A stretch of 64,000 nt of DNA from Macrostomum hystrix (Eukaryota; Animalia; Platyhelminthes). Location of the stretch: the NCBI GenBank assembly GCA_950097015.1, contig CATNEN010000033.1, positions 1,612,001-1,676,000 of the forward strand, written 5' to 3'. The translations under genes and the position numbers were made by a program. The notes under the pieces are model-generated. The model was given only the letters and a program-made list of their open reading frames with translations, was not told the DNA's origin and searched no databases. Numbering within the stretch: position 1 is the first letter of the stretch; each line of letters starts with the position of its first letter. Positions 22,401-34,852 of this stretch are shown piece after piece.

Positions 22401-25323
22401 TGAATATCCCATAGCGCACATCCTGAATATCCCATAGCACACATCCTGAAGATCCCATAGCGCACATCCTGAAGATCCCATAGCACACATCCTGAAGATC
22501 CCATAGCGCACATCCTGAATATCCCATAGCGCACATCCTTAATATCCCATAGCACACATCCTGAATATCCCATAACGCACATCCTGAAGATCCCATAGCG
22601 CACATCCTGAAGATCCCATAGCGCACATCCTGAAGATCCCACCAACAACCACTGCTCCAGGAGGGCACGGTCACGCAGGCGGAGTTTGACGAAGAGAGCC
22701 AGCGCTACGAGAAAGTCTGCGAGGATGCCTTCAACAACGCCAAGTCGGTGAAGGGTGTCCGTAACCGCGACTGGCTCGACTCGCCCTGGGTCGGCTTCTT
22801 TGAAGGCCGCGACGCTATGAAGGCGCCGGCCACGGCTGTGGCGCCGGAGCGGCTGAACAAGATCGGCCAGGTGTTTTCCACGGTGCCGCAGGGGTTCAAG
22901 ATTCACGCCGGTCTGAAGCGAACTCTCCGAGGCCGGGCCGAACTATTGGAGAATGAGCAGGCCGACTGGGCCATGGGCGAGGCGTTCGCCTTCGGCAGTC
23001 TGCTCACTGAGGGCTATCATGTCCGACTGTCCGGTCAAGATGTCGAGCGCGGCACCTTCTCGCACCGGCATCACGTGCTGCACGATCAGGAGAGAGACTT
23101 GGCCACCTATGTTCCCCTCAATAATATTGAGCAGGGTGAGTAGCGGAGTTTAATTGAGAATCCATAGATTCACAGTAATCCCATATATTCACAGTAATCC
23201 CATAGATTCACAGTAATCCCATAGATTCACAGTAATCCCATAGAATCACAGTAATCCCATAGATTCACAGTAATCCCATAGAATCACAGTAATCCCATAG
23301 ATTCACAGCTATCCCATAGAATCACAGTAATCCCATAGATTCACAGCTATCCCATAGAATCACAGTAATCTCATGGATTTACAGTAATCCCAACGGTTAT
23401 CGTTAACTTTTTGATTTCAGAAAGCTAGAAATCGCATAAGTTCTTATTAATTCTCAAGACTCAATTATCCCATTGGCTGCGAGTTTAGTTCACTCCATTA
23501 AGTTTTTATTATATCGGTAAAATTGCAAATATCTCATTATTCTACTATCAGTAGACAACCGAGTTTATGCTTGTCTCCACTCCGCAGGCCAGGCCGCTTA
23601 CACTGTGTGCAACAGCAGCCTGTCTGAGTACGCCGTAATGGGATTCGAACTAGGCTACTCGCTAAACGATCCCAACGCCCTGATCATGTGGGAGGCCCAG
23701 TTCGGCGACTTCAACAACACCGCCCAGTGCATCATCGACCAGTTCGTGAGCTCCGGCCAGCAGAAGTGGGTCAGGCAGTCAGGCCTGGTGCTGCTGCTGC
23801 CCCACGGCTATGAGGGCATGGGCCCCGAGCACAGCTCCGCCCGCCTCGAGCGCTTCCTCCAGATGTCCAGCGACGACGCCGATCACATCCCCGTGCTTGA
23901 CGACGACTTCATGATGCAGCAGCTGCACGACATCAACTGGTTCGTGTGCAACGTCACCACTCCTGCCAACTATTTCCACCTGATGCGCCGCCAGGTGCTG
24001 CTGCCGTTCCGCAAGCCGCTGATTCTGCTGACGCCAAAGTCTCTACTGCGCCTGCCTGAGGCGCGCAGCTCGTTTTCTGAGATGACCGGCAACAGCGCCT
24101 TCCAGCGGCTCATTCCCGACCAGGTAGGCGGCTTCTTAGTGTCTTATTCGTGTGCCCTTCGCTCCCATCGATTGCAGACATCCCAACTGAAGTTTTCCCA
24201 TCGAGCTCACTGACCAATCCCAAAATCTCTCACATCTCATAGTCTGTCAAAAATCCCATAGTCTGTCACCAATCCCATAGTCTGTCACAAATCCCATAGT
24301 CTGTCACAAATCTCATAGTCTGTCACCAATCCCATAATCTGTCACAAATCCCATAGTCTGTCACAAATCCCATAGTCTGTCACAAATCTCATAGTCTGTC
24401 ACCAATCCCATAATCTGTCACAAATCCCATAGTCTGTCACAAATCTGTCACCAATCCCATAGTCTGTCACAAATCTCATAGTTTGTCACAAATCCCACAG
24501 TCTGTCACAAAACCCATAGTCTATCAGATCCCATTGTCTAGAATTCCAGGTGCTATCACAGATTTTCCGTGATTCTTATCTGTCATCACAGGGCCCGCCG
24601 TCAAAGGCCGACCCTAAGGAGGTGGTGAAGCTGATTCTGTGCAGCGGCAAGGTCTACTATGAGCTAGTGAAGGAGCGAGAGCGAACCGGACACAATGACA
24701 CCATCGCCATCAGCCGGGTGGAACAGATCAGCCCATTCCCATATGACCTTGTCTGTGAGTGCTGCTTTGTTTCTTCGGTCGATTCTTTGAATGACATTTT
24801 AGAACCGTCCTTTTTTGACACGAAGATATTTTAAAGCCATCGATTTTTTGGGGAGGAGATTTTGAAGTCGCGGATTATTCTGTGGGTGAGAATTTGAAGC
24901 CATGGGTTCTCTGCGGGTGAGATTTTGAAGTCGCGGATTATTCTGTGGGTGAGAATTTGAAGCCATGGGTTCTCTGCGGGTGAGATTTTGAAGTCGCGGA
25001 TTCTCAGGGTGAGATTTTGAAGTCGCGGATACCCTGAGTGTGAGATTTCGAAGCCGTACTTCTCCCACCTTGCAGTGCAGGAGCTGAACAAGTACCCATT
25101 CGCCAGGGTGCAGTGGGTGCAGGAGGAGCACAAGAACATGGGCAGCTGGTTCTACGTGCAGCCCCGCGTGAACAACCTGATCCGCACCCAATGCCCTGAC
25201 CGGACCCACCGGCACGTATCCTACGCCGGCAGGCCGCCTTCCGCCTCGGCTGCCGCCGGCAACAAGCAGCTCCACCTGATGGAGATCGCCCAGTTCCTCA
25301 AGGATGCCATGAGCCCAGTCTAA
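10433..25323 (+). CDS. OGDH: 2-oxoglutarate dehydrogenase E1, mitochondrial; join(10433..10591,11240..11452,15088..15196,[15279..15323 or 15899..15940],18218..18473,19223..19769,20903..21205,22661..23135,23588..24123,24592..24754,25076..25323), about 1017 aa
   Basis: Hallmarks [40 protein letters not shown], ThDP-binding [47 protein letters not shown] and QEEHKNMG. Every junction is GT-AG with a compatible phase. Confidence 0.97.
10600..11050. repeat. 40-nt tandem repeat in OGDH intron 1 (GACAAGGGTATTGGATACAGTGACACATACAGGATACAGT)
   Basis: Period of 40 read directly (e.g. 10741 and 10781). Confidence 0.92.
11525..14895. repeat. 21-nt minisatellite (GACAGGGGAATTATTGAGTGT and variants), about 160 copies, OGDH intron 2
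   Basis: Direct periodicity; source of the [14 protein letters not shown] and NNSPVTL ORFs. Confidence 0.97.
15279..15323 (+). CDS. OGDH: OGDH alternative micro-exon 4a (45 nt, phase 1/1; [15 protein letters not shown])
   Basis: AATTTCAG acceptor and ATCT|GTAAGT donor; keeps the frame between the exon ending at 15196 and the exon starting at 18218. Confidence 0.75.
15899..15940 (+). CDS. OGDH: OGDH alternative micro-exon 4b (42 nt, phase 1/1; [14 protein letters not shown])
   Basis: GCTTTCAG acceptor and ATCT|GTAAGC donor; same phase and same last four nucleotides as 4a. Confidence 0.65.
16355..17825. repeat. 25-28-nt minisatellite (CAGAGCTTCAGGTTCAGTCGTCACCCCT) in the OGDH intron before exon 5
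   Basis: Direct periodicity with short and long unit variants. Confidence 0.95.
18500..19200. repeat. Two adjacent tandem repeats in OGDH intron 5: about 29-nt AGGTAGGTCAGACTGACCCACT-type (18500-18740) and 49-nt GGTGACCCACAGGGATGGGAGATGGGTCATGGTGATTCTAGCAGCTGAT (18850-19200)
   Basis: Direct periodicity; both units contain TGACCCAC. Confidence 0.9.
20180..20640. repeat. 21-nt tandem repeat (GGCCTTGAGGGATCTCCCTGT) in OGDH intron 6
   Basis: Direct periodicity; source of the ALRDLPV ORF. Confidence 0.93.
21270..22640. repeat. Compound satellite in OGDH intron 7: 20-nt CAGAGATCCCACCGCACACT (21270-21470), then 23-nt GAAGATCCCATAGCGCACATCCT (21470-22640)
   Basis: Direct periodicity; the two units are related (GATCCCA..CGCACA). 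Confidence 0.95.
23160..23390. repeat. 19-nt tandem repeat (AATCCCATAGATTCACAGT) in OGDH intron 8
   Basis: Direct periodicity. Confidence 0.92.
24240..24530. repeat. 19-nt tandem repeat (AATCCCATAGTCTGTCACA) in OGDH intron 9
   Basis: Direct periodicity. Confidence 0.92.
24840..25050. repeat. 63-nt repeat built from two related subunits of about 31 nt (GAGATTTTGAAGTCGCGGAT... and GAGAATTTGAAGCCATGGGT...) in OGDH intron 10
   Basis: Direct periodicity. Confidence 0.85.
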
Positions 25324-27419: not shown

Positions 27420-27990
27420 GTCCAGTTGTTGTAAATCATCATTGGTCTGACAGTCCAGTTGTTCTAAATCATCATTGGTCTCACAGTCCAGTTGTTGTAA
27501 ATCATCATTGGTCTGACAGTCCAGTTGTTATAAATCATCATTGGTCTGACAGTCCAGTTGTTATAAATCATGATTGGTCTGATAGTCCAGTTGTTGTAAA
27601 TCATCATTGGTCTCACAGTCCAGTTGTTTTAAATCATCATTGGTCTCACAGTCCAGTTGTTGTAAATCATCATTGGTCTGACAGTCCAGTTGTTGTAAAT
27701 CATCATTGGTCTCACAGTCCAGTTGTTTTAAATCATCATTGGTCTGATAGTCCAGTTGTTATAAATCATCATTGGTCTGACAGTCCAGTTGTTATAAATC
27801 ATCATTGGTCTCACAGTCCAGTTGTTTTAAATCATCATTGGTCTGACAGTCCAGTTGTTATAAATCATCATTGGTCTCACAGTCCAGTTGTTATAAATCA
27901 TCATTGGTCTCACAGTCCAGTTGTTATAAATCATCATTGGTCTCACAGTCCAGTTGTTGTAAATCATCATTGGTCTCACAGTCCAGCTTT
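27420..27990. repeat. 33-nt tandem repeat (CAGTCCAGTTGTTGTAAATCATCATTGGTCTGA), about 17 copies
   Basis: Direct periodicity. Confidence 0.95.
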
Positions 27991-29120
27991 TATATAGTTC
28001 AACAGATACAATTTGCACTAGTTTTCACAGGCAAGTCGTTATGCTTATTACACATATTTAATACAAATTTAAATGAGATGAACGGAGCGCCAAACTATTC
28101 TCATCCGAAATAACCTGCTGTACTGAGGTGCGAACTTATGTACTCTAGTGTACATTCTGAGCACACTTTAGCAAAAAATTTTCCGTAGAAGTATAATAGA
28201 TGATACAGTTAGTACCTTCTAACTGTATCTGTCTGCCATAAACCAGTTGGGAATTAAATATGCACCAAAGTTGTTAGCATTCCTCGTGATATTTTTCCGA
28301 AACCAGAAGATCGCTCTGCGTCGCTTTGTGCGTTTCGTGAACAACAGACACTTGCAACAGTCACTGTGATGTCCGTGAGTGGCAGTATTTCCTTACATCA
28401 GTTTAGAAATTACCAATGCAGATGCCCCGTAATATAAAATGGCTACAATAACTCATTATTCTAGGACGACAATGCATCGTTAAATGACGGAGAAGATCGC
28501 CAGCTACTCCCAAACCGCGAGGTATGTGGCCAGTGAGAGTGACAGATCATGATGGTTTGTGATCTCCGCATAAATTCACTCTGATATTGTGTCCCGAGTC
28601 AAAGGCCGATTGACTTTCCATGTCTGTAATTGCTAATCTGTCTTTAACTTTGAGGCATAGCACAGATCCTATTTACACAGATCCTATATTACACTGAATA
28701 CTACATGTATAACTGGATCACCAAAAGTTACTTTTTTAGTCCCAGCCATAGAGAGGCACCACTTATTTCACTTATTTCCACTTAAATAAAGCTTTGCAGC
28801 CTGTGCAACTGCTATTTGTCTATGTGTGAAAGTACGAACTTCTGAGCTTCTTGTGATGCTGGTGCTTGTCTATGGCTGGGATAAAAAAAGATAAATCCAT
28901 AATTAATTGACGCTCAGCCTAAATGATCGCTTCAAACTGTCTATGGGTAAGAATTGAAAAGCATTCAATGCCAGTACGACATCATTCTGTCACCCTCGCT
29001 TTCAGAGCCAAGAAGAGGCAGTTGCCGAATCGGCTGAACTGGGAACCCTCAGTAAGATTGCCGGAATTGCTGTTGTTCTTCTGCTGGTCTCATTTGCGTT
29101 CGTTGTGGAGCTAAGAGCTT

Positions 29121-29268
29121 CACAGTGCTCATGGGAAGTCAAAATGACACAAAAAATTGCCCAAGAAAATGATTTTGTAAACCATATACCAGAGCACCTC
29201 GTATACCCAGAACAGGTTTTTTTTTAATCGTAAGTGCTTGTCCTAGCGTACAACAGACTTTTTATTTT
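29121..29268 (+). repeat. Left terminal inverted repeat (CACAGTGCTCATGGGAAGTCAAAATGACAC...)
   Basis: Reverse complement of 33124-33271, differing only around the T/A run; weaker similarity continues about 40 nt inward. Confidence 0.95.
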
Positions 29269-29420
29269 GTTCGGCCAAAACAGGCTCTTAATTGCGACGT
29301 TGCTATGGGAAAAAACTTATTAAAATTGAATTAGTAAAAGCTTATGCATAGTAGTCTGTTTTAACAGCGTATTTTTTCAGAAAAAAATTGTCACTTATAA
29401 CCTTAAAACATAAATGTGAG

Positions 29421-31418
29421 CTACACATGAAAGCCATTGTAAGCAACAACAGCTCGGAGCAGTTCGTTTGGGAAAGTGCTGTGCTGCATGGGCACAGCAT
29501 ATCGCTGCCATGTTAGAGCGAAATCCCGGTGCAAGCTCTCGAAGGCTTGCTCGCTAAACGTGCCTAGTGGTCTCCCAGTGACGGCGCAGAATGTTCCCAC
29601 GTGGTGCAACAGCACATGCACTTTTGGGGAAATTGGCAAACCGAGCAGCTCGTATGTGGCCTTGAACTGCGCGATTCGGTCCTGGAAATCCGCGTGCAGT
29701 TCGGAGCCAAAGCAGCTGCTGACTACTGCATCAAAGCTCACCAGACAGGAGCCGTAGTGCTTCAGTTGCCGCGGCAGGCAACTCTGAAGCTCGGCAGATC
29801 GTCGAAGCAGAGTGCGACACGCGTTTCCCTCCATGCTGCCGCCGCGGTATCCTACACGCACAATGCTACGATCATGCGCCCACTGATAAGCGCAGTTGTC
29901 ACCCCACGCCGTGTTCAAAGCATCGAAAATGCGATTTGTGATGCCAAGCATCAGGTGCAGCTCTGGTGGAGGCAGAATGAAGAGAATTTCTGCGTCATCA
30001 TCTGCCTGAAGCAGAGGAGCCTCGACGCAGTTGAAGAAATCCTTTGCAGTGTTTCGCACCTTGCCACTGCTGGCGAAATCCAGCGCCAGCTGCCGAATTC
30101 TGCCGATTGTCCGCACTGGACCGCAAGTGTCTAGCGGAACTGGAGTCTCGCAGTAGCAGCATGAATGCCTGGACGCATGCGATTGCAGTCCACAGATGAG
30201 ATTGGCAACTTTCATATCGGCGGCTACTGCATTCACTGTGATGCCTCCAAGGCTCAAGAGCTGGAAGAGTGCCTTTATATTGTCGTAAGACTCGGCCATG
30301 TCGGGCACAGCAGCAAGCAGCAGCAGCTTCTTGACTCCAGAATCGGCAAAAAATTTGTGCTTGGTCGACTGATTTGGTTCGCTCTCACTTCGAGGTAGTA
30401 AGCTGACACAGATCTTGAAGAACTCGCCACCTCCGTCAAGTCCAAGCTTCACATCGATATTGTCGTGACCTCTTTCAAAAGCAACCTTTTCGATTAAGCC
30501 TTGAACATCATTGCAAACGACAGCAATTTTTGAACCTTCGCTATCCACTTTCAGCAGACTGTGCACAAAAAAATCTTCCAGATGCCGACTTCTTACTGCG
30601 AGACTCGCTCCCAAGTTCGATTGTACAGCCTTTACTGTGCCGGCTCCCATCCGCAAGATGCTAGCCGCTCGTAGAGTTTGCCTGTTGCTCAGATTGAGTG
30701 CGACTTTCAGTTGAAGCATCGTGGCTGTGGTCGCTTGAGCCAATTGTCCTGAGCTGCTGGCTGCTTCCACACAGTGACCCACAGTGACAGCCAGAGGCCT
30801 GCCTCCATGTGGTCTTTTCAAAGTCACTGTGCTAGATCCGGCTGCTTGCAGCTTGGCAGCGATTGCGGTGCTGGCCACTTGCTCTGTCGTTCCAGGGCTC
30901 AGCTGGGTGCTCAAGTTAATCAGCCGCGTCGCCTTGTTGCAGCGATGAGTCTTTCCTTTACCAATGGGCGAGTGGCAGCCAGAACACAGCCGTTCAGGAG
31001 TCTGAGGTGCATCGCCGCAAGATGATGGTCGGCCCCTCGTACAGTTTGGCGAACTAGTTGCATAGATACTGCATGGATCTGAGTTTTTGTGCAGGTTGCT
31101 GCGAGCAATCCTGCAGATCTCACATGGGCAGTCGGGCTGTGATCTTCTGCTGACTGGGATGCTGCTCAAGTCTTTAAGCATTTGCTCGTAGAGAAGTCTT
31201 GGCGGCAAAGGACGAGGCGATGGGCCAGCTAGCGAAGACACGATTCGGCGACAGCCCTCACACACTCCAGCAGGAAGAAAATGCTGCACAGATGAGAAGT
31301 TTGGCAGGATGTAGTGCTCAATCGCTGCTGCATCGTTTACACAGCGCTCAGCCTTGCGTAGGCAAAGCAGGCACACACTACGAAGGCACTCATCGTGGCT
31401 CTTTGGGCTGTTGGGCAT
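29421..31418 (-). CDS. DDE transposase, 665 aa from MPNSPK (open frame extends to 31469), RAG1/Transib/Chapaev-like
   Basis: Candidate triad KLGLDGGG (D at 30437), AADMKV (D at 30218) and SEQAFESLH (E at 29540). Zinc ligands CCYC and HVLLHH (H-x4-H), LHLMLG motif, and N-terminal H..CLR..C..C...P..C..C and C.C..C...RGRP motifs. Confidence 0.88.
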   Translation of the reverse strand: MPNSPKSHDECLRSVCLLCLRKAERCVNDAAAIEHYILPNFSSVQHFLPAGVCEGCRRIVSSLAGPSPRPLPPRLLYEQMLKDLSSIPVSRRSQPDCPCEICRIARSNLHKNSDPCSIYATSSPNCTRGRPSSCGDAPQTPERLCSGCHSPIGKGKTHRCNKATRLINLSTQLSPGTTEQVASTAIAAKLQAAGSSTVTLKRPHGGRPLAVTVGHCVEAASSSGQLAQATTATMLQLKVALNLSNRQTLRAASILRMGAGTVKAVQSNLGASLAVRSRHLEDFFVHSLLKVDSEGSKIAVVCNDVQGLIEKVAFERGHDNIDVKLGLDGGGEFFKICVSLLPRSESEPNQSTKHKFFADSGVKKLLLLAAVPDMAESYDNIKALFQLLSLGGITVNAVAADMKVANLICGLQSHASRHSCCYCETPVPLDTCGPVRTIGRIRQLALDFASSGKVRNTAKDFFNCVEAPLLQADDDAEILFILPPPELHLMLGITNRIFDALNTAWGDNCAYQWAHDRSIVRVGYRGGSMEGNACRTLLRRSAELQSCLPRQLKHYGSCLVSFDAVVSSCFGSELHADFQDRIAQFKATYELLGLPISPKVHVLLHHVGTFCAVTGRPLGTFSEQAFESLHRDFALTWQRYAVPMQHSTFPNELLRAVVAYNGFHV

Positions 31419-31682
31419 TTTTCTGAATTCGAATAGAACGTTTGAGCTATGCATAGATGCAAGGAACAATTTATGTCACAGGACAGACAATATCAGACTT
31501 TATTTTCAAGTGAGGTGACTAGCCGCATATGTACAGTGCTTTCTACAACTTGTACACTGCCATATCACATCTGTGATGCATCACACAAAAGTCATGATAC
31601 AATCTCAGCAGTCAATATTTATTGTACTTTTTCCTGCCGTCCCTAATCAAAACTAAATACTCTGTGCATTGCAGGATCAGCA

Positions 31683-33050
31683 TCTTCTAATATACTAAAA
31701 ATGAAAATCTTGTTTGTATGTTTGCAATCGACTAGCTCCCGAACGGCTCAACCGATTTTCGCAATTCCTTCGCCAAAAGATCACAAATGGGCCGGAATCG
31801 GTACACGTATTTTTATTAAGCTTAATTTCATTGCCAAGGGGATTAAATATTCGAAAAACTGTTTTAAATAGGCTTTTCTAATGCATTCTTGTTTTCAGCT
31901 TGTGCACAGTGAGGCTCCAGTGCCAAATTTAATGATTGCATCAGAGCCAGTTTTGATAACGCACGCGCGTACTGATAAGAACTCACAGGGAGGCTACCCA
32001 GAGGGTAGCGAAGGCAGCTAGTCTAATATACTAAAAATGAAAATCTTGTTTGTATGTTTGTATGTTTGTATGTTTGCAATCGACTAGCTCCCGAACGGCT
32101 CAACCGATTTTCAAAATTCTTTCACTAAAAGATCGCAATTGGGCCGGAATCGGTACACGTATTTTTATTAAGCTTAATTCCATTGCCAAGGGGATTAAAT
32201 ATTCGAAAAACTGTTTTAAATAGGCTTTTCTAATGCATTCTTGTTTTCAGCTTGTGCACAGTGAGGCTCCAGTGCCAACTTTAATGATTGCATCAGAGCC
32301 AGTTTTGATAACGAACTGATAAGAACTCCAGTGAGGCTACCCAGAGGGTAGCGAAGGCAGCTAGTCTAATATACTAAAAATGAAAATCTTGTATGTTTGT
32401 ATGTTTGTATGTATGTTTGCAATCGACTAGCTCCCGAACGGCTCAACCGATTTTCGCAATTCCTTCGCCAAAAGATCACAAATGGGCCCGAATCGGTACA
32501 CGTATTTTTATTAAGCTTAATTCCATTGCCAAGGGGATTAAATATTCGAAAAACAGTTTTAAATAGGCTTTTCTAATGCATTCTTGTTTTCAGCTTGTGC
32601 GCAGTGAGGCTCCAGTGCCAATTTTAATGATTGCATCGGAGCCAATTTTGATAACGCACTGATAAGAACTCCAGTGAGGCTACCCAGAGGGTAGCGAAGG
32701 CAGCTAGTCTAATATACTAAAAATGAAAATCTTGTTTGTATGTTTGTATGTTTGTATGTTTGCAATCGACTAGCTCCCGAACGGCTCAACCGATTTTCAA
32801 AATTCTTTCACTAAAAGATCGCAATTGGGCCGGAATCGGTACACGTATTTTTATTAAGCTTAATTCCATTGCCAAGGGGATTAAATATTCGAAAAACTGT
32901 TTTAAATAGGCTTTTCTAATGCATTCTTGTTTTCAGCTTGTGCACAGTGAGGCTCCAGTGCCAACTTTAATGATTGCATCAGAGCCAGTTTTGATAACGA
33001 ACTGATAAGAACTCCAGTGAGGCTACCCAGAGGGTAGCGAAGGCAGCTAG
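31683..33050 (+). mobile_element. Head-to-tail tetramer of a non-autonomous Helitron of about 340 nt (units about 31686-32021, 32022-32364, 32365-32707, 32708-33050)
   Basis: Each unit starts TC(TAATATACT) and ends GCAGCTAG, with a GCTACC-CAGAG-GGTAGC hairpin just before the CTAG. Internal GTTT/GTAT microsatellite and GGCTCAACCGATTTT block. The array sits between A and T. Confidence 0.85.
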
Positions 33051-33123
33051 TAAAATACTAAAAAGATGGGAATGCTTCATTTTTCGTTGCAACTTCACAA
33101 TAAAGGACCTGTTTAAGCTGAAT

Positions 33124-33271
33124 AAAATAAAAAGTCTGTTGTACGCTAGGACAAGCACTTACGATTTAAAAAAAACCTGTTCTGGGTATACGAGGTGCTC
33201 TGGTATATGGTTTACAAAATCATTTTCTTGGGCAATTTTTTGTGTCATTTTGACTTCCCATGAGCACTGTG
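33124..33271 (-). repeat. Right terminal inverted repeat (...GACTTCCCATGAGCACTGTG)
   Basis: Reverse complement of 29121-29268. Confidence 0.95.
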
Positions 33272-34852
33272 CACACGGCATAGACAGGTCTGGGACTTGT
33301 GCCTAGCATCCAGATGCATCCTTGTTTCGTTGTCCCTGGTGGCCACTGTGGCGCTAGAGCTGCTCACGCTGAGACCCAGAGAAGTGCCACTGGCCAGGAT
33401 AGGCAATGTCATGATTCGGCAGTTTCAGTCCTGCATCGATGCCCCACATCAGCTTTGCAGCAAACTATCAGGCCTGTTTGTCCTCACACTGGTGATCTTC
33501 GGCATTCCAAGCTGCCTGTCGATGGTGACGGAGATCGCCTGCGAGATAATTGAACGCAAGGAGAAGTCCGAGTGGGAGACTCACTCTACAGTAATGATCA
33601 TTTGGCGAGCCCTAACTTTCTGTCTTATAATTCTACAGATTCGATTGGGCTTCAAGTACAGAAACAAGTCGATTCAGCTGAGGCTTAGTCTTGCGTGGAT
33701 CATGCTCTCAGTCATCATGGCAGTCAATATCGCAATCTGGTTTTCAACAGTCGGTCTGGAAGTCCAGGGCCTCAACGGGCAGAGAAAGTGATTCCGAAAG
33801 GCTCCTACTGCGAGAAGAATTCGATCGGCTACTTCAACGATTTGCTGTACCCATTTCAAATTGAGTTCTGCGTCATGACGTCCCTCCTGGCTTACACGCT
33901 GATGCATAACATGGGTCGGTTGGGAGAGTCTTTACAGAGCTCGGACACCAGCAGCGGTGGCAACGATGCTGTTGGAGCGAGAGGCAACGCTTTCGTGGAA
34001 CTTTCAGCAATGAGGAACTACGCGTTCTGGTCACTTGCCTCTCTGCTGTTTTTTATTGGCACCCTGGCCGGTGCCACCTTTATCCACTTCGATGACCCGA
34101 ACGACGTCCATCGCGGCCTGGCGTTTGACTGCGCGCTGCTCATTCAGCATGCGTGCGGCATTCTGTGCATCAGTCTTCTAATCTGCTACGCCAGAGTGGA
34201 CAGAGAGAGACGCACAGGTGCGGGTCACTTTGCGGACCGGCTGCTCCTGTGGGTGGGCGCGGCTGCCATTGTGTTGAATTGCTTGTACAGAATCTGGGAA
34301 TACTTCATCATCGCCACGCAGGAGCTGCAGGATATCTCGAATGCGATAGGAATGAATTCCACTGCCCACCCTACACCTAAGTTGGAGCTGTCCCAAGTGA
34401 AGCGAGCTAGGGAGCTAATTCAGGTGATCAGTCGGTTTCTAAACATCTTTCAGTGCATGAGTCAAGTCGCTCTGCTGGAATGGGCTCTGGTCAGCAGGTT
34501 CTCCAACACCAACAGGCTGTTTCAGTGTCAGATCGGAAATGCGCAGTCTGGAAGCTCAGACCAGCCACAGGTGAACGAGAATCCTGACGACAAGCTTTCT
34601 GACAAGATTCGCGTGATGCTTAATCTTCTGCTCACAATCAACGGATCCGAGTGGCTTCTCAGCGCCGTGTGCTTCAACTACTTCTTTACTGGTGATCAGA
34701 AGGACGCCCTCTCTTTGCTTCTGCTGCCGCTGCATGTGTTTTTCAGGTTCCACTCGGCAGTGTGCTGTCACGACTTCAAGAAGCACATGAGGATGGAGAC
34801 AGTCCAGGCTGATGACAACACCGGCTCCGTGCAAGCAGAGTTCGCCAATTCG

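Follow-up and report, generated by a model that had tools for sequence, protein, structure and literature searches.

The Chapaev group of cut-and-paste DNA transposons was reportedly named by Kapitonov and Jurka in 2007 and is said to have been put in the CMC superfamily by Yuan and Wessler in 2011; it belongs to that superfamily or, by another scheme, to a broad Transib superfamily. In this study we analysed an element within a 64,000-nucleotide stretch of the Macrostomum hystrix genome (contig CATNEN010000033.1, positions 1,612,001 to 1,676,000; hereafter the window). We find that it is very probably a recently inserted member of the Chapaev group, an autonomous DNA transposon of the cut-and-paste kind, and neither a Transib element nor an element of the RAG1-like (RAG1L) type. 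The Chapaev group itself is already known, and the element is a further member of it. Published hallmarks of the group are a target site duplication (TSD) of 3-4 bp, CAC..GTG termini and the transposase motifs C(2)C, LH and H(4)H (PMC4079192). The present locus has CAC..GTG ends, all three motifs together with a DDE triad, and an N-terminal pattern of the type-I Chapa kind, and 4-bp TSDs are found in its relatives.

Other described systems come close to this arrangement. The Chapaev3 elements Merrow, Garfield and Conan (PMC4079192) have the same three motifs and CAC termini (CACTGTG in Merrow), but their TSD is a 3-bp TWA between A and T and their transposases are shorter, at about 556 aa, and often contain an intron. 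In contrast, the relatives of the present element have 4-bp TSDs with no TWA preference, and its transposase is encoded by a single exon. CACTA/EnSpm and Mirage elements have CACTA ends and 2-3-bp TSDs, whereas we find CACAG ends, 4-bp TSDs in relatives and no Pfam domain of the EnSpm type. For Transib, Kapitonov and Jurka described a terminal inverted repeat (TIR) composed of CACAATG, a variable spacer of about 23 bp and AAAAAAATC, and the essential positions of the recombination signal sequence (RSS) are positions 1-3 of the heptamer and 5-6 of the nonamer (PMC1131882).

The ends of the element were defined by a repeat search and pairwise alignment. Its two TIR arms are complementary at 93% over 192 nt, with 147 matches in the first 148 nt; both arms are opened by CACAGTG and are complete to the terminal base. 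The terminal 30-mer occurs exactly 2 times in the window against 0 expected from 100 shuffles. We also compared positions 28800-33600 with the Logan contigs of four runs (X1, X2, X8 and X9, of which X8 is labelled as another species). Contigs from other insertion sites stop exactly at 29121 (in X8) and at 33271 (in X2), which fixes the ends of the element independently of the TIR pair. A-rich sequence follows the heptamer after 21 nt (ACAAAAAAT, 29149-29157), and the two ends are symmetric. The transposase is the sole long open reading frame (ORF) with homologues in the element, the other ORFs overlapping it on the opposite strand. Coordinates are collected in Table 1.

Table 1. Features of the element and of its insertion site, in positions of the window.
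Feature	Positions	Strand	Description	Basis or reference
Whole element	29121..33271		4151 bp; transposase gene on minus strand	TIR pair and contig breaks from other copies
Left TIR	29121..29312	+	192 nt, 93%; one mismatch in first 148 nt	Repeat search, pairwise alignment
Right TIR	33080..33271	-	Partner arm of left TIR	Repeat search, pairwise alignment
Terminal heptamer CACAGTG	29121..29127	+	Mirror copy at 33265-33271; equals RSS consensus heptamer	PMC1131882
Conserved subterminal block AAAAAATTGCCCAAGAAAATGA	29151..29172	+	TIR positions 31-52; mirror copy at 33220-33241	Ungapped TIR alignment
Transposase ORF	29424..31418	-	665 aa, single exon, uninterrupted; stop codon 29421-29423	
RAG1/Transib-fold catalytic core (predicted)	29424..30743	-	Residues 226-665; D328, D401, E627; zinc C420, C423, H601, H606; H488	
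Chapa/NZD-like double zinc finger (putative)	31089..31418	-	Residues 1-110; ligands H8; C16, C19, C53, C56; C97, C99, C102	
Third zinc site (putative), CCHC	30939..30986	-	C145-x2-C148-x9-H158-x-C160	Conservation counts in 51 homologues
Satellite array	31683..33050		About four 343-bp units between ORF upstream region and right TIR; absent from most copies	
Left part of interrupted exon (probable otopetrin)	28997..29118	+	Open frame across the 29118/33272 joint	
Two extra bases TT	29119..29120	+	Absent from empty site and from element; joint skips 4153 bp (4151 + 2)	
Right part of interrupted exon (probable otopetrin)	33272..33791	+	Begins CACACGG, abuts element end	

The minus-strand ORF spans 29421-31469 and amounts to 682 aa when counted from an upstream TTG. 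Since most full-length relatives begin at query residue 18, we take the ATG at 31416-31418 as the real start. The transposase family is very large, with 3155 representative clusters at E<=1e-3, and most of the full-length relatives measure 650-710 aa; none of the matches bears the name of a transposon family. The best named relative is a hypothetical protein of Macrostomum lignano with 49% identity. We aligned 51 full-length homologues, which are the basis of all conservation counts given here. Residues D328, G330, D401, K403, C420, C423, L487, H488, H601, H606, Q624, E627 and H630 are invariant or nearly so in this alignment. The complete DDE triad is present in the window protein, with D328 in a DGGG motif, D401 in a DMK motif and E627. 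C(2)C corresponds to C420-x2-C423, LH to L487-H488 and H(4)H to H601-x4-H606; in the homologues, conservation of every residue in these motifs and in the triad is complete or at least 96%.

Family databases were less informative. Neither Pfam nor PDB sequences were matched when searched with the single protein. In a Pfam scan of the 51 relatives (E<=0.1), DUF1280 was matched by 12 and zf-AD by 8, and none of them matched a transposase family. At the same threshold the RAG1 core families had no match in the window protein or in the relatives; the sole match with RAG1 in its name was the N-terminal RAG1_imp_bd, found in one member with an E of 0.033.

We then compared the profile of the alignment with all PDB sequences. 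Below E 0.4 the only matches were RAG1L (6b40, E 0.022) and RAG1 (E 0.034-0.11); the next match after RAG1 was a ZAD domain, on the N-terminus, and HzTransib was not among the matches. RAG1 residues were numbered by the chain offset that places C727 and C730 on the CTLC motif. The profile alignment pairs D401 with D708 of RAG1, C420 with C727, C423 with C730, H488 with H795, H601 with H937, H606 with H942 and E627 with E962. An AlphaFold2 model made from the 51-sequence alignment (pLDDT 88.7) has the RNase-H strand order, in which D328 ends the first strand and D401 lies just past the fourth. All 49 Foldseek matches of the core model at E<=1e-3 are RAG1, BbRAGL or HzTransib structures, and the next one is the P element at E 0.014. 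Superposing model residues 227-665 on mouse RAG1 460-996 with VIA-align gave a Z of 25.3 and a root-mean-square deviation of 3.5 Å over 409 residues. The corresponding Z scores were 23.3 for HzTransib (PDB 6pqx/6pqn; 371 residues aligned), 22.0 for BbRAGL, 13.6 for the P element and 8.9 for Hermes. The core is predicted to have the RAG1/Transib fold, equally close to the three solved relatives.

The predicted likeness to the RAG1 core and to BbRAG1L (ProtoRAG) extends from the DDBD to the C-terminal domain, and the D-D-E triad and the C2H2 zinc site align residue by residue, although identity over the structural alignment is about 13-14%. The N-terminal zinc pattern also appears NZD-like, and the heptamer is identical to the RSS consensus. 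Unlike these systems, however, the present element has no RAG2 partner gene, no RING finger and no detectable NBD fold, and its symmetric ends lack the 12/23 asymmetry.

These results bear on an earlier note made from the letters of the window, which had described a transposon of the RAG1, Transib or Chapaev type with near-identical 148-bp TIRs beginning CACAGTG, symmetric ends with A-rich sequence 21 nt after the heptamer, and an uninterrupted transposase of about 665 aa with D-D-E candidates, CxxC and H-x4-H. The anatomy agrees with this description at every one of these points, and all the residues have been located. The general type is borne out by the motifs and by the predicted core fold, for which the note had proposed the comparison with RAG1 and HzTransib. 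Its further suggestion of a lineage near the RAG1 ancestor did not hold: similarity to RAG1 and RAG1L is marginal (E 0.02-0.04), the fold match is equal for RAG1, BbRAGL and HzTransib, and the family is very large.

The N-terminus of the protein contains eight zinc ligands, H8 to C102, that are invariant or nearly so in the homologues. H8 stands eight residues ahead of C16-x2-C19, followed by C53-x2-C56 and then by C97-x-C99-x2-C102. In RAG1, the NZD ligands are H102, then C110, C113, C175 and C178 of zinc finger ZFa, and H206, C210 and C213 of ZFb (bioRxiv 10.64898/2026.01.24.700457). The spacing from H102 to C110 is the same as from H8 to C16, with the same ligand order and spacing logic. 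The Chapa domain has been described (PMC4411706), and its type I has a ZFb with one N-terminal and three C-terminal ligands and is without helix H2 (bioRxiv 10.64898/2026.01.24.700457). Judged by the order and spacing of its ligands, the N-terminus of the window protein has the type-I Chapa pattern.

Behind this putative double finger lies the CCHC site, whose residues C145, C148, H158 and C160 are again invariant or nearly so. In comparison with Chapaev, the protein is distinguished by this CCHC knuckle after the Chapa domain and by having no RING finger. A model of residues 1-225 (pLDDT 87.8) was used for an N-terminal fold search. Nothing above Z 3.0 was returned by this search: there was no match to the RAG1 NBD or for the CCHC zinc site, and the RAG1 NZD was absent from the matches. 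We also observed a GRP motif at residues 129-131 (31026-31034, minus strand) ahead of the knuckle, where 37 of the 51 homologues have G, 34 have R and 42 have P. It resembles GGRPR, the motif that opens the nonamer-binding domain (NBD) of RAG1. That GRP together with helices 162-193 might form an NBD-like nonamer binder is a guess that the fold search, which gave no NBD-like fold, does not support.

The ends of relatives provided TSDs and a comparison of TIR layout. The M. lignano relative is present as five copies with an identical transposase and CAC ends starting CACGGTTGGG. Four of these copies have perfect 4-bp TSDs (ATCT, TTGC, AACC and CTCG), and the flanks of the fifth agree at 3/4. 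A metagenomic relative, L028, has the TSD GACT. Two further metagenomic relatives with 39% identity, L039:54-3058 and L042:89-4134, are complete elements with the termini CACGGTG and CACACTG, respectively. The flanks of L042 agree at 3/4 bases; those of L039 show no TSD, in an element that is multi-copy in a short-read metagenome and on a contig that may be chimeric. Heptamers in the relatives are CACGGTT, CACGGGT, CACGGTG and CACACTG. For TSD length, by which the earlier note would have separated the families, the 4 bp of the M. lignano relative and of L028 is the Chapaev value, whereas this copy itself has no TSD.

The TIRs of the present element, M. lignano and L028 align without gaps. CAC at positions 1-3 and positions 31-36, 38-43, 46-48 and 51-52 are invariant, and positions 8-30 are variable. 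The same register is kept in L039 (CACGGTG, with TGCCCA at 38-43) and in L042 (CACACTG, with an A-run at 33-37, T at 38 and CTCCA at 39-43). Five lineages have this ungapped layout of CAC, variable spacer, and A-run with TGCCCA block at 31-43. In L006, L040 and L041 (34-36% identity) the layout is not clear or the contig ends within the TIR, and the layout is shown for the closer subgroup only. The cited Chapaev literature makes no mention of the A-run and TGCCCA block.

TIR positions 30-38 of the present element are CAAAAAATT, a match of 7/9 to the Transib sequence AAAAAAATC; the match of L028 is 8/9. All five essential RSS positions are retained and, like most Transib families, the element has a '23'-type signal at each end. 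Compared as sequences, the TIR layout is that of the Transib/RSS23 consensus, with a heptamer, a variable spacer of 22-23 bp and an A-rich nonamer. The block at 31-52 is nonamer-like and probably a transposase-binding site. Separately, we noticed that the ORF start AAAAATGCCCAAC (31405-31425, minus strand; Met-Pro-Asn) resembles the TIR block AAAAAATTGCCCAAG (29151-29165), and many relatives start with MPN. This resemblance (AAAAATGCCCAA, coding Met-Pro-Asn) is weak in other lineages and was dropped as a probable coincidence.

Apart from its ends and its protein, the element resembles Chapaev as a single-ORF element of about 2.8 kb, from which this copy differs by its missing TSD and by an added satellite array. 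Depth of the element-body contig in X1 is about 5x that of the flank contig, which is a rough guide only. Element-body contigs in X1 and X2 differ from the window at 1-2 bases per 440-1760 bp, and those in X8 at about 1%. The family has multiple copies in this genome and is young. The array has a period of 343, 3.9 copies and 94% matches in TRF, and a short TGTTTGTA microsatellite was observed within it. A joint from 31682 to 33051 that skips 1368 bp has a depth of 318 in X1 and is also found in X9. Most copies are therefore without the array, and the canonical element measures about 2783 bp. The 343-bp unit is among the most abundant sequences of X1, at contig depths of 1e4-1e5 versus 78 for the single-copy flank; searches for tRNAs and Rfam families gave no match to it, and the window contains no further copy.

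At 29534, 29782 and 30164 the bases in all four runs are C, T and G, respectively. The window differs at each of these bases, and this copy therefore has three private substitutions: L629 where the others have V, S546 where they have N and S419 where they have P. Of the 51 homologues, 47 have P419, which adjoins the zinc ligand C420; S419 occurs in one other family member. Together with the array, the private changes mean that this copy may not be the active master copy. A substantial possibility, which we place a little on the doubtful side, is that this copy is a dead passenger moved in the past by other copies, its open ORF being merely a sign of youth. The three substitutions, a kept proline among them, the 1.37-kb array situated 264 bp upstream of the ATG and the lack of the element in any RNA run would all fit such a passenger. 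On the other hand, the ORF is fully open with all catalytic and zinc residues kept, both TIRs are intact to the terminal base, and S419 is not confined to this copy. The element had been called intact, which holds for the ORF, these residues and the TIRs and fails for P419S, the array and the absent TSD. It had also been called young and possibly active, which fits the near-identical TIRs, other copies that are about 99% identical or better, and an empty site in three runs.

That empty site is seen in X1, X2 and X8, where a contig joins 29118 straight to 33272 and the flanks are without differences. Across the joined flanks runs one open frame with no codon missing, reading ...FVVELRATRHRQVW..., so that the element splits a coding exon. 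Against Pfam Otopetrin the downstream ORFs score 18-19 bits at an E of about 1e-3, below the curated cut-off of 27.8, and the host gene is probably an otopetrin. Either the insertion is not fixed, or the gene exists in two identical copies of which one carries it. Adding TT and the element to the empty form gives the filled form, and no base is duplicated (flanks ..GCTT and CACA..). We also tried hidden TSDs of 2, 3 and 4 bp with shifted boundaries (CACA, GCCA, CCAC), none of which fits both junctions and the empty site. The missing TSD and the two filler bases point either to an excised element that was captured by end joining or to a repair that went wrong after strand transfer.

It is improbable that the insertion is an assembly artefact and the real locus empty. 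All flank-covering contigs in X1, X2 and X8 show the empty joint, and among the contigs listed none runs from the flank into the TIR at this locus. However, misassembly seldom yields an insert like this one, a complete element exact at both termini with two bases added, and in contig sets minor variants are lost and repeats cause breaks.

Another route of entry, to which we give a slim chance, is that this copy was inserted by transposase cleavage at a genomic cryptic heptamer followed by end joining, and not by ordinary transposition. The right flank CACACGG sits directly against the element end CACTGTG; this head-to-head CACTGTG/CACACGG pair could be likened to a V(D)J signal joint, and the TT junction to a processed hybrid joint. 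Excised signal-end fragments can be reinserted by RAG. The comparison draws on one event, and a flank starts with CAC by chance at about 1.6% per end. No A-rich sequence lies 12 or 23 bp into the right flank, so there is no nonamer behind the cryptic heptamer. If true, this route would mean that recombination chemistry of the V(D)J kind operates in the germ line of an invertebrate.

It is likewise very unlikely that the element is of the Transib or ProtoRAG/RAG1L type and a direct relative of the RAG1 ancestor: the predicted fold (Z 22-25), the exact RSS heptamer with its Transib-like spacer and A-run, and RAG1L and RAG1 as best PDB sequence matches would suit such a relative, but Transib is discounted by the 4-bp TSD of relatives versus its own 5 bp, by the N-terminal Chapa domain that canonical Transib lacks, by the want of any Pfam RAG1 core match in the protein and 51 relatives at E<=0.1 and by a marginal profile score (E just 0.02 to RAG1, with no sequence match to HzTransib), and ProtoRAG by the absence of a second, RAG2-like ORF in the element. 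The preference for Chapaev over classical Transib, to which the earlier note already leaned, is supported by the CAC ends, the C(2)C, LH and H(4)H motifs, the Chapa-type zinc pattern and the 4-bp TSDs of relatives.

Several points weigh against a recently inserted, autonomous Chapaev element with a RAG1-like core. The assignment follows published hallmarks and not a tree with named Chapaev sequences, and sequence similarity to RAG1 is marginal, at an E of about 0.02 below usual significance. The best N-terminal fold matches, four different ZAD structures (residues 6-70, Z 2.3-2.8), are weak; they agree with the link between ZFa and ZAD drawn in the preprint on the RAG1 NZD and alone are not strong evidence. 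This copy is without the integration signature that a TSD would provide. No listed contig links flank and element at this locus, the filled form coming from the assembly alone, and the element appears in no RNA run. In the mechanism outlined below, the hairpin and the two-part end binding are carried over from RAG1 and HzTransib.

For the Chapaev element that we favour, we propose that the transposase would contact each end twice, once at the CAC heptamer, which would lie in the active site, and once about 23 bp further in, at the A-run/TGCCCA block, where an N-terminal part of the protein may bind positions 31-43. With D328, D401 and E627 the enzyme would nick the DNA at the border of the heptamer and release the element, and release would probably proceed through hairpins on the flanks and leave blunt element ends. 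Integration would be staggered and normally give a 4-bp TSD. The entry or the repair of this copy would have departed from that course, leaving two filler bases and no TSD.

The surroundings of the insertion contain further features. Just upstream of the probable otopetrin exon, ORFs on both strands at 27464-28113 repeat the peptide MMIYNNWTVRP..., which indicates that the DNA there is a tandem repeat of about 33 bp. At 28731-28890 an inverted repeat of 31 nt (87%), its arms separated by 98 nt, adjoins 28800-28960, where the X1 contig depth is 1536; it is possibly a miniature inverted-repeat transposable element or another high-copy repeat. Farther upstream, at 23605-25323, ORFs look like exons of 2-oxoglutarate dehydrogenase (OGDH), judged from the sequence itself.

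For the host, the effect of this copy is that one coding exon, probably of an otopetrin gene, is knocked out. For the family, the same ungapped block distance in five lineages suggests that a heptamer-spacer-nonamer layout is common to Chapaev and Transib and, if so, that this layout predates the RAG lineage. Neither the function of the Chapa domain nor any Chapaev system has reportedly been validated by experiment, a point that the preprint lists among its limitations (bioRxiv 10.64898/2026.01.24.700457). A young multi-copy family with an open ORF, exact RSS heptamer ends, a Transib-type second block and a high-confidence RAG1-like model offers a practical system, in which possible questions are the origin of RAG-like two-part signal recognition and the role of the NZD/Chapa domain.

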